From Podarcis melisellensis (taxonomy: Eukaryota): a stretch of DNA of 64,000 nt. Of the stretch, positions 1 to 63,854 are shown piece after piece. Location: assembly GCA_964234715.1 (NCBI GenBank), contig OZ174278.1; one strand, given 5' to 3'. The notes under the pieces are model-generated. The model was not told the origin of the DNA. It ran no database searches and worked only from the letters and a program-made list of their open reading frames with translations. The translations under genes were made by a program, and so were the position numbers. The stretch's first letter is position 1; each line of letters opens with the position of its first letter.

Positions 1-996
1 CCTGATGTCGTGCCACCCTGCTGCTGAGGTGGGAACATCTCCTTCCCATTGGCTTGTTCTTGATCTGACACACTTATCTTGCTTTGGATTGAAAGCTCAA
101 GGTCACCCCTACCTCCATATTTCAAGTCAGGCTGTCTAATTTTTTATTTCCTTTTTTCCAAGTGCCTACAAGTTTATCCACTCAAACATATGCCTGCCCC
201 CTTTTTTTCTATTTTACACTTAGAAAATTGCTCAGAAAGAGGTGAGAGCTGGCTTTGACATGAGGGTCAGCTAACCAGCAATGTGAGCAGCATTGCTCCA
301 AGGGAAGTTTCCTAATGACTGGCACAAAGGCTTTGCACAACACTGCTGGGAATGCTCTTCTGTCAGTCATTTTAAACATTCCCTAAAAGCAAGACTTTGC
401 ACATTGCTGGTATGGTGGTCCTCAAGGCAAAGATGGCTTCTGCTCCAAATCAAGACAGGTTCCCCAAATCCAATCAGGGAAAGAAGACTGCAAGTCTCTC
501 CGAAATGCAGTATCCAAATGATATACTCCCAAGCTAGGGAGGAAACTACACCAGTCCTGAAGCTGGCAGATCTTTGGATGGACAGTTCAACCTTATTTTA
601 TTCTTTGTCCCTGCACTCTACCTTTGTCTTGTTCTTGTGTCTATTGTTAACGCTCAGCCTGAGCACCTTTCTGGACCTGGTCAAACTGTTGCATCTGTCA
701 AAAGGGTGAATGCTGCTGGTACAACAAGCTGTTGCACCAGTGTAGTTCCCTGAATTGGTTGAAATAATTCAACCACAAGTGATGCTGTATTGCTGCAACA
801 GTTCATATTCTTGATCCTCTAAACTTGCAGTACTCAGTACCCCAAGCAGCAATTTGTAGGATCAGGCTATTAAAAGGAACAGAATTTATGATATTTTGAA
901 TTGCAGGAAATTCCAGTGACTATTCACAGCTACTGTTGCAGATAGGTTGCCACACACTTTTAGCATGAAATGTTGATAGAGGGGGAAAACTACTAC

Positions 997-1165
997 CTGT
1001 TGTGGATATGGCGTTGTTCTGAGTTTTGTCTTCATTTTATTACTTCTAGGTTTTGTTGCTTTTCTTGTTTCTTGTGAGGTAGATGCCGAGTTTCTGCATG
1101 GAAACTGTGATTTAGAAATGGTGACCTGGTCCAATGATAATGGGAGTTCCTTATATTCTATATCT
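997..1165 (-). CDS. SIM2: SIM2 coding exon 9, 169 nt, with the basic NLS-like segment; the gene continues left of the window
   Basis: (T)DIEYKELPLSLDQVTISKSQFPCRNSASTSQETRKATKPRSNKMKTKLRTTPYPQQ within ORF 886..1218; acceptor TTTTCAG|, donor CAG|GTAGTA. Confidence 0.94.
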
Positions 1166-2632
1166 CTGAAAAAACAACAACAGCATTGCAACAGAGGAAT
1201 GGTCCATTTTCTCCTCACTTAGGTGCCCCCAAGCATTTAAATTGGGGTGGGGGGAGAACCTCAGGCCTAAGGTGCCAATGTGATCCTTTGGGCTTCTCTA
1301 GCTGGCCCTTGGGGCTCTGCAAGCCATGCATCACCCTCCCAACGCTCCTTGAGTGCTCTTGCCTGGCTGTACTGTTTCCTTGAACTATGATAGTATCTCT
1401 CAGATGCCTAGATGGAGACTGTGCGTGTATACACACGTGTACAGCAGGCTGCATTCCAGGTACACACAAGGTAAAAACCACACCCTTTGCTCTATCTACT
1501 TTGGCCTCCAGCTTTGCCCCCTGCTGGCACATAACCCCTGTAAAGTTAACCCTGAGTGTATGTTTCCCTCACACTGAAAAAGGGTTCTCCAACCCTGGTA
1601 TAAAGAAAGCTTCAAAAAAGAATACCAGACATGCCGCAGTCACTGGACTATTAAAACTGAATCCTTAATGCACAAAGAAATGATAGGAAGGGGTTGGTAG
1701 CCGTGAAGCTAGGTTAGGAGTTCAATTCAGGACACTTGAACTCCAGACACTGCCAGAGAGGAGTAACTGGGCCACCTCTCATACTTTCAAAGCTTTCATT
1801 CAACTGCCTCTATAATACTGTGTATGTAAGCAGTTATTTGATATACACTCTCAACCTGTCATTTGTTCATAGTTGTGCAGCTGGAACCCATTAATAGTTA
1901 ATAATATATTTGAAAAATGGCTGCCCTTCTCCATCCTAAAGTAATAGTCTGCCTCTGTGTCATAAGAATGGTTATCTCCTTAGGTTGTTTTTTGTTTAAT
2001 TAGTTTTCTGGAGTTTTTTGGGGTTTTTTGTCATCAGCTGATCTGCACCTGCATTTTCTCTAAAAGAGCTGCATTTATTCCAATGCCATTTTAGTTCATT
2101 AATATGTCACAGTGTAGGGGTAGAGCAGGACCAGCCCTAACATTAGGCAGAGCAAGGTGGGCATCTCAGGTGGCAGATGCTGGAGTGCAGGAGGGCAGTA
2201 GTAGCATCGCCCCCTGATCCCTACCCCAGCTGTGCCTCTCTGATGCAGAATAGAATTATGTGTGTGCAATGCAGCCTGCATTGTGCCACCTAAGGTAGAC
2301 TGCTCCCTTGATGTGCAGCGAAAGATGCTGTACAATTGCCAGTGTTGAAATAAGATTTAACTTCTAGTTCAGGCAACCTCTGTACATGGAAAGGGATGTG
2401 CTCTCTTCTACCTTGTGTCAGGCAGCAAACCTTTCAAGAAAGTTTTTCAATAATGTCATTTTATGTTGTTTGAAATGTAGTCATTCTTTTAGTATTAGAT
2501 TGGTTGTCTAGAACACAGTCTTCAGCTGTGAGATTGAAACCCAGAAGTGAGTTGGCCATACCAAAATACTTTCCCCCCCCCCCCCCAGGAAATGATGTCT
2601 ACCTTATAAAGCCTAATAGAGTATTATAAAGC

Positions 2633-2694
<62 letters not shown>

Positions 2695-2745
2695 GGTTTT
2701 GGTGTCCTCGGGTGTCTTCCCGTGTAAAAGTTGGGGTGTCTAGGC

Positions 2746-2779
2746 GACGTTTCGACGAGGTCTCACTCGTCATCTTCAG
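2746..2779 (-). ncRNA. Minimal hammerhead ribozyme motif, sense to the SIM2 pre-mRNA
   Basis: Exact reverse complement of 2849-2882. Confidence 0.7.
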
Positions 2780-2848
2780 GCTGGTGCTTTCGGCTTCTTG
2801 TTACTGGAACAGAGCTTGTTCCAGTAACAAGAAGCCGAAAGCACCAGC

Positions 2849-2882
2849 CTGAAGATGACGAGTGAGACCTCGTCGAAACGTC
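2849..2882 (+). ncRNA. Minimal type I hammerhead ribozyme motif (PLE-type)
   Basis: CTGAAGA-T-[GACGAG/TGAGAC/CTCGTC stem II]-GAAA-CGTC; palindromic ACGT in place of helix III; predicted cleavage after GTC at 2882. Confidence 0.7.
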
Positions 2883-2964
2883 GCCTAGACACCCCAACTT
2901 TTACACGGGAAGACACCCGAGGACACCAAAACCTGCATTCCTGTACCCGTGAAAATCTACGAAA

Positions 2965-3011
<47 letters not shown>

Positions 3012-3062
3012 GGTTTTGGTGTCCTCGGGTGTCTTCCCGTGTAAAAGTTGGGGTGTCTAGGC

Positions 3063-3096
3063 GACGTTTCGACGAGGTCTCACTCGTCATCTTCAG
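3063..3096 (-). ncRNA. Minimal hammerhead ribozyme motif, sense to the SIM2 pre-mRNA
   Basis: Exact reverse complement of 3312-3345. Confidence 0.7.
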
Positions 3097-3311
3097 GCTG
3101 GTGCTTTCGGCTTCTTGTTACTGGAACAGAGCAGGATCTCAGTGTTTGAGTTCCTATAAATACTGTTGAGGGGGTGTGGTGTATAGCCTCCAATGTTCTG
3201 GGCAGAGAGGAACATTGGAGGCTATACACCACACCCCCTCAACAGTATTTATAGGAACTCAAACACTGAGATCCTGCTCTGTTCCAGTAACAAGAAGCCG
3301 AAAGCACCAGC

Positions 3312-3345
3312 CTGAAGATGACGAGTGAGACCTCGTCGAAACGTC
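3312..3345 (+). ncRNA. Minimal hammerhead ribozyme motif, second plus-strand copy
   Basis: Identical to 2849-2882. Confidence 0.7.
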
Positions 3346-3572
3346 GCCTAGACACCCCAACTTTTACACGGGAAGACACCCGAGGACACCAAAACCTGCA
3401 TTCCTGTACCCGTGAAAATCTACGAAAGCATATATATATATATATATATATCGGTGATCAACATTTTAAAGTAACAATTTGGAAATCAGGATGGAAGAAA
3501 CAGATAAAGTTATCAACATGAGACACTGAATAAAATGAATGTGGTATACAATGGTAGGAAATATGGACTTAC

Positions 3573-3720
3573 GTTAGGACATAATTAACACTCACTATGC
3601 AGTGAGGTCGTGATGAGCGGCTGTTGTGTACAATCGTGGCATAGCTCTGGACCCAAACCCAGCCACTGTTCTTTGACAGCAACCGATAGTACTTGGTTGT
3701 GACTTGTCCTTTCACCAACA
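3573..3720 (-). CDS. SIM2: SIM2 coding exon 8 (PAS-B/PAC), 148 nt
   Basis: (L)[48 protein letters not shown](T); acceptor TTTATAG|, donor AC|GTAAGT. Confidence 0.96.
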
Positions 3721-6487: not shown

Positions 6488-6605
6488 GCCCTCCAGCTGT
6501 TTTGGGACTACAACTCCCATCATCCCTAGCTAACAGGACCAGTGGTCAGGGATGATGGGAATTGTAGTCCCAAAACAGCTGGAGGGCCAAGTTTGGCCAT
6601 GCCTG
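6488..6605. mobile_element. Palindromic hAT-type MITE, left end truncated
   Basis: GGCCCTCCAGCTGTTTTGGGACTACAACTCCCATCATCCCT ... AGGGATGATGGGAATTGTAGTCCCAAAACAGCTGGAGGGCC; same family as 9491-9622. Confidence 0.75.
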
Positions 6606-9446: not shown

Positions 9447-9628
9447 CATAGAATCATAGAATTGGAAGGTACCCCGAGGATCATCTAGTCCAGTGTTTCT
9501 CAACCTTGTGCCTCCAGCTGTTTTTGAACTACAACTCCCATCATCCCTGACTAGCAAGACCAGTGGCAAGGGATGATGGGAATTGTAGTCCAAAAACAGC
9601 TGGAGGCACAAGGTTGGGAAACAACCCC
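9447..9628. mobile_element. CR1-like 3' tail (minus strand) interrupted by a palindromic hAT MITE (9491 to about 9622)
   Basis: CATAGAATCATAGAATTGGAAGG...ATCTAGTC, then CAGTGTTTCTCAACC...GGTTGGGAAAC, then AACCCC resuming the CR1-like sequence. Confidence 0.7.
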
Positions 9629-10202: not shown

Positions 10203-10402
10203 CTTGAATCTAGAAATATCAGTTTTAGATCTAGGCTTGCTCTGAACATAAACATGTTACTATGGAGTTTGATCTCAGTGATTGCACTCGGAGGTAATGA
10301 TTGACCTACAGCAACCAGCCCCACAATTTGGTAACAGGTATCATACAAAGACATATCCAACATGTACTGACGTATCTTCAAATAGCCACTGCAGTGGATC
10401 AC
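10203..10402 (-). CDS. SIM2: SIM2 coding exon 6, 200 nt
   Basis: [66 protein letters not shown](R), matching ORF 10199..10402; acceptor ACCAG|, donor AG|GTAAGT. Confidence 0.97.
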
Positions 10403-10499
10403 CTGGTATGATATGGGAGAAAAAAGGTACAGTTATGAAGGAGAAACGAATGACTAAGATGGCCTCTTGAGAATGCTGTTTACCTAAAATCTCCAGGAT

Positions 10500-10503
<4 letters not shown>

Positions 10504-10548
<45 letters not shown>
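10504..10548. repeat. (CT)n(GT)n compound microsatellite
   Basis: Directly visible, about 100 nt upstream of the exon 6 acceptor. Confidence 0.95.
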
Positions 10549-12104
10549 TTCCTGAGTAGTCTTTTTACAGGTGAATTGGTAGGTTTAAAGCAGAGGTCAA
10601 CATATACCATGTATTGCATGCCAACACTATATGACAATTAAGCTGACATTAAATTGCAAAGATCTTGACTCTACATTCTCTAGATACATTCAGAGTATCA
10701 AATTATTTTTGTGGCCCTCTGAATATTTATTATACATTATCTTCTTATAACATAATGCTCAATGTGAAATATCCAGATAATATTTGATTGTCTTTGCATA
10801 AACCTAATTAAACATGCATACACACAAATTTAAATTATACATTTGATAAGCCTATGTTGAAATGCACACACAGAACACTGGTGATTGTACCGAAGTCTTG
10901 CCATAAACAGTTATCAGCTTGGAAGGAGGGAGGCAGAGATGAGTGGTGGCAGAAAGACCGACAGAAACTGAAAGACAGTAGGATTGTGTCCCATCCCCTG
11001 GGGTTGCCAACACAGAGTCCACAGATCTCAGTAAATAATCCGCTCAAAAATCTGCAACGCATGAGAGTCTGTTTGCTCTTTCAGCTCAGCTCCTGTTTGC
11101 ACTGGTTTGGCCTCTCCTACACTGACCACACTCCATTAAACATGCCCACATTTCACTTGAATGGACACACACCTATTCTGAACAAAGAGAGGTGCAAATA
11201 ACTTCTCTCTATGAGCAGTACGGCAGTTGCTGGGGAAGATGCCTTTTTCCACACTGATGCGACAGGGGGGACATGCACACACCATTTGGTAGTGCTGATT
11301 CTTTTTCTGCTCTTTTAAACATGGGTGAGTTATGCCACACACCCTAGAGCAGCCATTTTATGCCACCCACACCATGTTAGCCATTTTGTGGTTGGCGCTC
11401 ATGGCATAATTCAGCACAAAAATATGTGAGTGTGGAAGCACTGCACATGCAACTGGAGACAAGCCTTTTTCAGAGTTTGTGATTGTGCAGACAGAGCTTA
11501 TAGCCATACCATCAGTATATGCATAGGCTCATTCACATGGCATGCTGAACCTTCATAGGGATAGAAGCAATTCCATTGGCTTCTCCACATGCATTCATGA
11601 TTCATTATAATGTGTAGCCTATGCATATTTACTCAAAAGTACGTTCAGTGAGTTTAGTGGTTTCAATAACATGTACACATGCAGAGGCTTTCCACCTTTG
11701 CCTCCTCACATTCACTCAAGGAGAGAAGAGGAGGAAGAACTGCTGTGCAATTTCCACCTTCAATCTATTTGATCCTCAGAGTTTTCAGTTATCCTTGCAA
11801 ACAAGCCATTTGCTATTTGCTGTGGCAATAGCTGCTTTCATAGAGGCTGCTGATGCAGCAAACAAATGACAGCCAAAACCGTCGCAGACTGGATTTGGGG
11901 TTGGCTTCTCCCGGGACATAGCATGAAGTAGCAAAGGAAAACATGCAATACTATGATTGTTTACTTGGGAATAAGCCCCAATGAATTCAGCAAAGCCTTC
12001 CTTTTGAGTAAACATGCACAGTATCAGGCTATAAGCTTTACTGCAAAGCATTTGCATGTCTGCACAAGAGGCTGTGGACCTGGAAGAAGGGAATGGGGAG
12101 GGTG

Positions 12105-12107
<3 letters not shown>

Positions 12108-12159
<52 letters not shown>
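12108..12159. repeat. (GA)n microsatellite
   Basis: Directly visible; explains the ERERER/SLSLSL ORFs. Confidence 0.95.
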
Positions 12160-12163
<4 letters not shown>

Positions 12164-12349
12164 TGCATGGTGGATGCGCTGGGGAAACGGAGATTGCCCA
12201 ACAGTCGGCTAATTAGTCAAAGGAGAAGGTACAAAATACACTGGAGTTTACCTGCCTAAATAAGTTCTTTGTTTAATTTACATATTGCCCCATAGTGAAG
12301 CATTGTGGGTAGTTCACAGTAAGAAAGAGCTTTACAGAGCAAAACACCG

Positions 12350-36864: not shown

Positions 36865-37089
36865 CAGTGGTACCTCAGGTTACATACGCTTCAGGTTACA
36901 GACTCCGCTAACCCATAAATCGTGCTTCAGGTTAAGAACTTTGCTTCAGGATGAGAACAGAAATCGTGCTCCGGCGGCGCAGCGGCAGCAGGAGGCCCCA
37001 TTAGCTATGTGGTGCTTCAGGTTAAGAACAGTTTCAGGTTAAGAACGGACCTCCGGAACGAATTAAGTACTTAAGCCGAGGTACCACTG
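36865..37089 (+). mobile_element. Tc1/mariner (Tigger-like) MITE, copy A
   Basis: TA-CAGTGGTACCTC ... GAGGTACCACTG-TA. Confidence 0.9.
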
Positions 37090-38407
37090 TACTGCATTGC
37101 TCAGGAAAGTCTTCCCACGGCCAAATTGCGTATTTCTAAAAATTGGTGTGCAATTATTGAAAACAACAGCAACCACCCTGTGCTCTGCCAGCCAGATCCT
37201 AACAGTAGAGCCAGCGCGTTCATTGTCACTTACTTGCATAAAAGTATTCTAATACAGTACGATCCATAGCATGTCTACTCAGAAGTATACCCTATTAAGT
37301 TCAGAGAGATTCGCTCCCAGGTTAGGCTGCAATTAACTCCACTTACCTGGGAGTAAGTCCCACGGAACTCATAGAGATGTATTTCAGAGTAGATTTGGTT
37401 AGGATTACACTGTTAGTGTGGATAGGATTGTGCTGCAGGGTTATAATCTTTAAACATGTTTACCCATAAGTAAAGTAAATGTGAATTCACTTGGACCTGG
37501 TATATGATGTTAGCTTTTCTGCTTTAATCTGCTCTAGAAGTAGTGATTAAATAGGTGTAATATAATTGATCATGCAATATTCATAAGAAAACCAGAAACA
37601 GTAATAAGACCATGCGCTGCGGGTTTTCAATTCTGACTGAATAAGAACAGCCAACGCCAAGGAAAGCTGAAAATCTCCAGGTTTTTCCCGCTGCTACAGA
37701 AGGAGACGGCTGGCTTCGGCAAACGCTGATTGATAGTAAACAGGGGTTTGTGCTCATGGCATGTTAAAAGGTGCATGCAGTTTTTCAGCTGAGAGAGAAA
37801 GAGAGGGAGTGTGTGTGAATATACAAAGCCCTCGGATTTTACAGCCTGGTGGTTCTGTGCAAGACGACTAAGTTTTGGTTTAAGCGATCCACAGTTGCGT
37901 CACGGGCGTTTTAGTATTCTGAAGCTGGGCTGGGAGGTGACTAAACGTGAAAGGCAGAAAGCGGGATACCTTTATAAATGAAGCGAGTCCCATTAAGATC
38001 GAGTGGAAAAGTCCTTAAACCCGAACTGGACTCTGGATTCTAAGCACATTGACTTGAAGTGGGAGAGTCTCTTACTTTTTCTTAGTGCGGGAGTCCTCCG
38101 CTTAACCAGGCTATGGCGTTCCCCACCACTACCTTGGCGGCGCCCCAAACCAAGTGCCACCAGGGCAGAATCTGGAGGGCCCCCCAAGCGCAGTAGGGTC
38201 ACATTTTGAAATAGCACGTGACGCATCCTAATAGAGGTGAAGACCACTAAGTCCGCAGGCTACAATTTATCCAGTTGCCCCCCTCTAGCCCGAGTCCTCT
38301 CCGTTTAAAGAGGGGTTGTGAGCCCCACGCGCCTTTTTCTATTTCGCCATATAAGTTAACCAACAGGGCAAATGGCAATGATGGCGCAGTGCTAGCAGAG
38401 CAGGATA

Positions 38408-38633
38408 CAGTGGTACCTCGGGTTAAGTACTTAATTCGTTCCGGAGGTCCGTTCTTAACCTGAAACTGTTCTTAACCTGAAGCACCACTTTAGCTAATGT
38501 GGCCTCCCACTGCCGCCGCGCCGCCGGAGCATGATTTCTGTTCTCATCCTGAAGCAAAGTTCTTAACCTGAAGCACGATTTCTGGGTTAGCGGAGTCTGT
38601 AACCTGAAGCGTATGTAACCCGAGGTGCCACTA
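38408..38633 (-). mobile_element. Tc1/mariner MITE, copy B, inverted relative to copy A
   Basis: Near-exact reverse complement of 36865-37089; TA flanks. Confidence 0.9.
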
Positions 38634-45599: not shown

Positions 45600-47900
<2,301 letters not shown>

Positions 47901-63390: not shown

Positions 63391-63644
63391 CAGTGGTACC
63401 TCAGGTTACATACGCTTCAGGTTACATACGCTTCGGGTTACATACGCTTCAGGTTACATACGCTTCAGGTTACAGACTCCACTAACCCAGAAATAGTACC
63501 TCAAGTTAAGAACTTTGCTTCAGGATGAGAACAGAAATCGGGCTCCGGCAGCACGGCAGCAGCAGGAAGCCCCATTAGCTAAAGTGGTGCTTCAGGTTAA
63601 GAACAGTTTCAGGTTAAAAACGGACCTCCGGAATGGTACCACTG
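63391..63644 (+). mobile_element. Tc1/mariner MITE, copy C, with an internal 16-bp tandem expansion
   Basis: Same family as copy A; CAGGTTACATACGCTT x4 at 63402-63465; TA flanks. Confidence 0.9.
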
Positions 63645-63706: not shown

Positions 63707-63854
63707 NNNNNNNNNNNNNNNNNNNNNNNNNNNNNNNNNNNNNNNNNNNNNNNNNNNNNNNNNNNNNNNNNNNNNNNNNNNNNNNNNNNNNNNNNNNNNN
63801 NNNNNNNNNNNNNNNNNNNNNNNNNNNNNNNNNNNNNNNNNNNNNNNNNNNNNN
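63707..63854. other. Assembly gap (148 N)
   Basis: Run of N. Confidence 1.

Follow-up and report, generated by a model that had tools for sequence, protein, structure and literature searches.

Four strand-alternating hammerhead motifs in an intron of a single-minded family gene probably derive from two recent fold-back insertions of a Penelope-like element end

The 64-kb stretch of DNA analysed here, referred to below as the window, carries on its minus strand exons of a gene that, judged by its protein profiles, is a member of the single-minded (SIM) family. The exons of this host gene were each searched against profiles singly and not as parts of a joined model, and the relevant ones are as follows.

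46136-46312, minus strand: bHLH exon of the host gene (bHLH_HIF1A, E 3.6e-18)
3596-3720, minus strand: PAS-fold exon, upstream of the intron that holds the insertion (PAS_3, E 2.3e-06)
889-1164, minus strand: next exon, start of the SIM_C region, boundaries approximate (SIM_C, E 9.7e-10)

The donor of the PAS exon, GTGAGT, lies at 3595-3590 on the minus strand and opens an intron of 2.4 kb. The gene is presumably SIM2, and the exon and intron in question presumably exon 8 and intron 8, names that fit the human protein sequences. The bHLH exon, which is the first coding exon, is surrounded by a G+C-rich region (45900-47300) with long spurious open reading frames on both strands, and this composition suggests a CpG-island promoter.

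About 30% of the 2.4-kb intron is filled by repeated sequence, arranged in two units within an (AT)n tract.

2640-2691, no strand: (AT)26 microsatellite, left part of the target (sequence, repeat search)
2692-2816, minus strand: unit 1 inverted 5'-truncated element end (sequence, repeat search)
2746-2779, minus strand: hammerhead core in the unit 1 inverted arm (pattern search)
2817-2936, plus strand: unit 1 forward 5'-truncated element end (sequence, repeat search)
2849-2882, plus strand: hammerhead core in the unit 1 forward arm (pattern search)
2937-2966, plus strand: unit 1 tail, 28-30 nt, at the forward end only (identical to 3400-3429)
2967-3008, no strand: (AT)21 separating the units (sequence)
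3009-3209, minus strand: unit 2 inverted 5'-truncated copy (sequence, repeat search)
3063-3096, minus strand: hammerhead core in the unit 2 inverted arm (pattern search)
3210-3399, plus strand: unit 2 forward 5'-truncated copy (sequence, repeat search, DNA depth gradient)
3312-3345, plus strand: hammerhead core in the unit 2 forward arm, with predicted cleavage after C3345 (pattern search)
3400-3429, plus strand: unit 2 tail, 28-30 nt (sequence; reduced DNA depth)
3430-3451, no strand: (AT)11, right part of the target microsatellite (sequence)

Both units are small, at ~250 bp and ~420 bp. A repeat search resolves them into two perfect palindromes, one with arms of 122 bp (2690-2811/2817-2938) and the other with arms of 192 bp (3007-3198/3210-3401), and unit 1 is 100% identical to unit 2 over 166 and 172 nt. 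The outer ends of the arms are common to all, whereas the inner ends differ, and the units were therefore truncated at different points. In unit 1, the inverted copy extends 4 nt past the truncation point of the forward copy, deeper into the element, and has in addition an odd T at 2816. In unit 2, the palindrome appears to be interrupted by an 11-nt loop (3199-3209). In reads derived from other copies, whether of RNA or of DNA, however, the consensus upstream of 3210 ends in CTCTCTGCCCA, and because the loop is the reverse complement of CTCTCTGCCCA, it is the element's own upstream sequence rather than a spacer. The tail sequence follows the forward arms only and is missing from the inverted arms. 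No further copies of the element were found in the window outside the two units, and the open reading frames of the 64 kb include no reverse transcriptase (RT) or GIY-YIG coding sequence. Two 104-aa open reading frames that cross the palindrome (2776-3090 on the minus strand and 2855-3169 on the plus strand) result from the mirror symmetry and run through (TA)n; they were rejected as genes. A C15 run (2582-2587) lies to the left of the target microsatellite.

The original prediction had described four identical copies of a 34-nt motif in the order minus, plus, minus, plus, and a pattern search of both strands of the window recovered precisely these, as four perfect matches; the chance expectation for the 34-mer is 0 across 100 shuffles. 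A search with a generic descriptor (CUGANGA, 0-1 extra nucleotides, a stem of at least 4 bp, and GAAA), the kind of check that had been proposed with the prediction, returned the same four sites and no others in the 64 kb, with 2 matches in total among the shuffled controls (n=30). The two minus-strand cores are 317 nt apart, as had been claimed, and the two plus-strand cores 463 nt apart. The minus-strand cores begin 500 and 817 nt past the PAS-exon donor; together with the exon matches, this agrees with the claim that the SIM pre-mRNA contains them, about 480-830 nt past the donor. The four copies are not independent of one another, as they belong to two palindromes in two mutually identical units.

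In each core, CUGAAGA and GAAA are arranged as in a type I hammerhead, and the cleavage triplet that follows, GUC, conforms to NUH (GAAA-CGUC). A single unpaired U lies between A9 and G10.1, and the G10.1-C11.1 pair closes a 6-bp helix II (GACGAG/CUCGUC) that forms in all folds of the isolated motif. At the position of helix III there is only the palindromic ACGU (3341-3344) and no stable helix. Helix I can form just two pairs, G1.1-C2.1 and C1.2-G2.2, in keeping with the ~2-3 bp that had been anticipated. Published minimal hammerhead ribozymes (min-HHRs) of Penelope-like elements (PLEs) are marked by a G10.1-C11.1 pair, a long helix II, and palindromic 15.2-16.2 positions; they occur as thousands of dispersed, truncated copies in fishes, coelacanth, frog, turtle, and snakes, and some form opposite-strand pairs 100-700 bp apart (PMC4209133). 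The motif described here resembles them in its CUGAAGA and GAAA boxes, its unpaired U, its 6-bp helix II, the ACGU at 15.1-16.1, and the GUC triplet, as well as in its occurrence as dispersed truncated copies, some of them in opposite-strand pairs. Unlike most of that set, it has a helix I of 2 bp rather than the usual 4-5 bp, a length of 2 bp being reported only for the Drosophila virilis variant (PMC4209133). Unlike that set also, the present family is nearly invariant and hence offers no covariation. These traits, read from the sequence, support the assignment made in the original prediction, namely a putative PLE-type minimal type I hammerhead in which ACGU replaces helix III.

The Infernal check proposed alongside that assignment came out negative: the Rfam hammerhead models (types I, II, and III, HH9, and HH10) gave no match at the gathering threshold in the whole window, nor at E values up to 10 in the interval 2600-3500. 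Sub-threshold matches to Rfam miRNA-precursor, sok, and similar families in the same interval reflect hairpin shape alone and were rejected. The motif shares with Hammerhead_HH9 and Hammerhead_HH10 its position on the sense strand of a vertebrate gene intron; those families, however, are canonical, conserved, single-copy intronic ribozymes of amniotes, whereas the present motif is a recent repeat and has no Rfam match. When loop positions were left free, the core pattern was found in 0 metagenome contigs and 0 viral contigs, collections ill-suited to animal repeats, and searches for the core strings in published full text returned unrelated primer matches only.

Public sequencing reads place these two units in a large family. 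The reads placed on 3199-3595 came from DNA contigs (run X13), raw RNA reads (X23 and X24), and what are likely RNA contigs (X15). In X13, summed DNA contig depth is 96,000-523,000 over the element compared with 9.7 on the unique flank; summed depth is not a copy number, and we take these values to indicate a family roughly on the order of 10^4 copies. Depth increases from 5' to 3' along the element, as is expected for truncated reverse-transcribed copies, and falls in the tail to about one-fifth to one-half of the depth of the body. Loose ends of the aligned reads reveal other copies that end at 3401, or that start at 3246 or 3318, straight against (AT)n, and such (AT)n junctions are present in the loose ends of both DNA and RNA. 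Partial tandems occur as well, with 3401 joined via AT letters to 3277 or 3360. The family is polymorphic in DNA at 3236 (C>T) and 3304 (G>A). Loose ends at 3311 show that some family transcripts have ...GTTACTCCAGC upstream in place of ...GAAAGCACCAGC, which suggests a sub-family with a ~15-nt deletion, for which helix I would be no longer.

We consider it probable, at roughly 85%, that the locus consists of two adjacent and very recent insertions of a PLE 3' end into one (TA)n microsatellite within the 2.4-kb intron of the host gene. PLE insertions are strongly 5'-truncated, often have an inverted 5'-truncated copy beside the forward copy, carry a tail of 30-40 bp at one end only, prefer (TA)n as a target, and bear a hammerhead near their 3' end (Evgen'ev and Arkhipova 2005; PMC8557442, Craig et al. 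2021). The units described here display each of these features. In both, an inverted 5'-truncated copy abuts a forward 5'-truncated copy; the tail stands at one end only and, at 28-30 nt, lies at the low edge of the published range; (AT)26, (AT)21, and (AT)11 flank the units; and the hammerhead is close to the 3' end. They differ from the insertions of that study in being tiny and without open reading frames, and in lying side by side in one microsatellite. That the insertions are very recent follows from arms and units being 100% identical.

Each insertion consists of a 5'-truncated forward copy with its tail, set head to head with a tailless, inverted 5'-truncated copy, and because the truncation points differ, one palindrome has arms of about 122 bp and the other of about 192 bp. 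The mobilising enzymes would be the PLE reverse transcriptase and endonuclease, to which the units are linked by motif and architecture, and the inverted arm may have arisen by template switching or snap-back. With an element end that presumably carries the min-HHR of metazoan PLE pseudo-LTRs, two insertions of two arms each would yield four cores that alternate in strand. Another class of hammerhead-bearing repeats, the retrozymes, is short, non-autonomous, and related to PLE pseudo-LTRs (PMC7229834, Cervera and de la Pena 2020; 10.64898/2026.07.22.740005, Li et al. 2026 preprint). Like the units at this locus, the non-LTR retrozymes of animals have type I hammerheads; those of the retrozymes work as dimers. 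Retrozymes are, however, head-to-tail tandems with canonical hammerheads and circular RNAs, whereas here the copies are inverted, helix I is minimal, and antisense sequence separates each direct pair of cores. Identity with a non-LTR retrozyme was rejected on the grounds that the copies are inverted and the hammerhead is minimal rather than head-to-tail and canonical.

A transcript of either strand of such a double insertion would form two long, perfect hairpins in which each core is paired with its antisense copy. Minimum-energy folds of 2692-3430 on either strand consist of two uninterrupted hairpins, at -686 and -683 kcal/mol, and in them all four cores are fully paired with antisense copies. 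The original prediction had stated that the antisense arm is made before the core; the order of the arms confirms this for each strand. Because the cores are paired to antisense arms that are transcribed before them, ribozyme folding at the locus is very unlikely, and on these models the cores are almost certainly masked. The predicted masking of the ribozyme by the hairpin is thus upheld by the folds, with which the ADAR-like editing of the family RNA described below agrees; both are what would be expected of an RNA that lives as a long hairpin. The further proposal that tandem cores on each strand dimerise in cis fared less well. It is geometrically possible, but the double-hammerhead fold of two isolated cores (-20.3 kcal/mol) lies 6.7 kcal/mol above their minimum (-27.0 kcal/mol), just as the hammerhead-like fold of a single isolated core (-8.5 kcal/mol) lies above its own (-10.2 kcal/mol), and by these calculations hairpins of about -685 kcal/mol would outcompete a double hammerhead. 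Thus, the ribozymes would be inactive at the locus, and the hairpin RNA would instead serve as a substrate for ADAR.

Family RNA covers the element in both orientations (X23, X24, and X15). No RNA reads fall on the unique intron flank (3451-3595) in these three runs, and the RNA evidence accordingly concerns the family. Among ~430 family RNA reads, there is no pile-up of molecule ends at 3345/3346, the predicted GUC site, nor at any other position, and RNA depth is even across the site; efficient cleavage is thus not apparent in the family RNA. What the reads do contain is clustered base changes: A>G at 17 positions and T>C at 18 in X23, and at 13 and 16, respectively, in X24. The A>G changes occur solely in reads whose first mate is on the minus strand and the T>C changes solely in the opposite orientation, such that, if the library is stranded with the first mate antisense, all are A-to-G changes in RNA. 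In one loose-end read, every T of a stretch has become C. The changed letters have about zero depth at these positions in the DNA contigs, and the two polymorphisms that the DNA does contain (3236 and 3304) differ from them. The case that the A>G clusters reflect ADAR editing of long double-stranded RNA is strong but is not formal proof, as the DNA and RNA runs may come from different animals.

About 30 edited sites lie within 3225-3378, including 3316. Editing extends into the core itself: about 8-25% of sense-strand reads carry a change at positions 3339-3341, which correspond to A13, A14, and A15.1 in the GAAA box. A G is the 5' neighbour at 7 of the 30 edited sites and at 27 of all 96 adenosines, a comparison that is uninformative on ADAR preference. 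Penelope elements have been reported to be massively hyper-edited in lizard (PMC5625713, Porath et al. 2017) and to rank with the most heavily edited repeats of Xenopus tropicalis (PMC10636886). The pattern found here, clustered and strand-consistent A>G changes in self-folding repeat RNA, resembles the ADAR hyper-edited inverted repeats of those studies; unlike them, in which the hammerhead core is not discussed, it includes the editing of A13, A14, and A15.1. A speculative extension, to which we attach a low probability, is that the hammerhead core of fold-back PLE transcripts may regularly be destroyed through editing by ADAR; if this were true, hairpin formation and editing together would be a general host/element route by which thousands of intronic ribozymes are disarmed. 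Alternatively, partial unwinding by editing could free some cores, which might then cut host pre-mRNAs, that of SIM among them.

The original prediction went further and proposed a self-silencing palindrome that lets a self-cleaving RNA persist in a developmental gene; on an extended form of this reading, the RNA would be tolerated in the SIM2 pre-mRNA, possibly with regulated unmasking. The minus-strand cores do lie in the sense transcript behind antisense arms that are transcribed first, and the masking is both predicted by folding and consistent with the editing of family RNA. The fold-back is, however, the default product of PLE insertion (PMC8557442), and the structure recurs in a family of ~10^4 copies, so that nothing about it is specific to this gene. 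The masking of the cores is thus a consequence of the insertion mode of PLEs and not an evolved self-silencing device. Moreover, with arms and units 100% identical, the insertion is so recent that retention by selection could not yet be visible, and there has been no time for anything to "persist." In addition, min-HHRs cleave poorly in vitro even as designed dimers (PMC4209133), helix I has 2 bp here, and the ends of family RNA do not accumulate at the GUC site. We regard this proposal as highly improbable. Another reading, in which the insertion has its effect through double-stranded RNA formed within the intron, whether as an ADAR substrate, as a source of small RNAs against PLEs, or by disturbing the splicing of the 2.4-kb intron, is unlikely but deserves more weight. 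Perfect hairpins of 122 and 192 bp make up ~30% of the intron, family RNA shows clustered A>G changes, and Penelope hyper-editing is published (PMC5625713; PMC10636886); yet the RNA runs examined contain no reads over the unique flank of this intron, and any such effect would be a generic side effect common to thousands of copies.

Two other readings were weighed. Perfect palindromes, TA-repeat flanks, and the lack of coding capacity would all suit a fold-back DNA transposon or MITE with a preference for TA, in which the hammerhead-like string had arisen by chance. In such an element, it is hard to see why arm lengths differ between units while the outer ends are common, why the palindrome centres are arbitrary truncation points, or why a one-sided tail breaks the symmetry. 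Furthermore, a family depth that climbs to the 3' end and many truncation points are typical of reverse-transcribed copies, and the motif has several independent min-HHR traits that lie outside the search pattern (PMC4209133), all of which makes a DNA transposon very improbable. The least credible reading is an assembly artefact, in which chimeric long reads or the collapse of a repeat generated the palindrome. Assemblies are known to have difficulty with PLE fold-backs (PMC8557442), and the X13 DNA contig at the locus covers 3459-3595 only and not the junctions of the insertion. Nevertheless, the sequence on either outer side is unique and has no mirror image; the two arms of a unit differ by 4-5 nt in one case and 11 nt in the other, all of it true element sequence; a tail stands on one side alone; and the dsRNA-type editing seen in family RNA shows hairpins of this kind to occur in vivo.

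The preferred reading, two recent PLE-end insertions, makes the four motifs an ordinary by-product of abundant insertions of this kind and not a special arrangement of the SIM gene, for which the locus has little importance: it is one more copy of the end of an abundant and recently active retroelement. The hammerhead motif, the fold-back structure, the preference for (TA)n, and ADAR editing have all been described already. What the public RNA reads supply is a set of family-level data, in which GUC cleavage is not apparent and heavy editing of double-stranded RNA reaches the catalytic GAAA box.

The window holds other repeats away from this intron. A ~227-bp repeat is present at 36866-37091 and, inverted and 1.3 kb away, at 38406-38632 (95% alike); a third copy (63449-63633, 92%) adjoins a run of N at 63707-63854. 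The repeat is probably SINE-like and could likewise form double-stranded RNA. A ~107-bp repeat (6490-6596 and 9511-9617) matches in both orientations (89% and 84%) and is palindromic and MITE-like. Finally, GA/CT dinucleotide tracts at 10400-12200 give rise to open reading frames that read "RERERE" and "SLSLSL."
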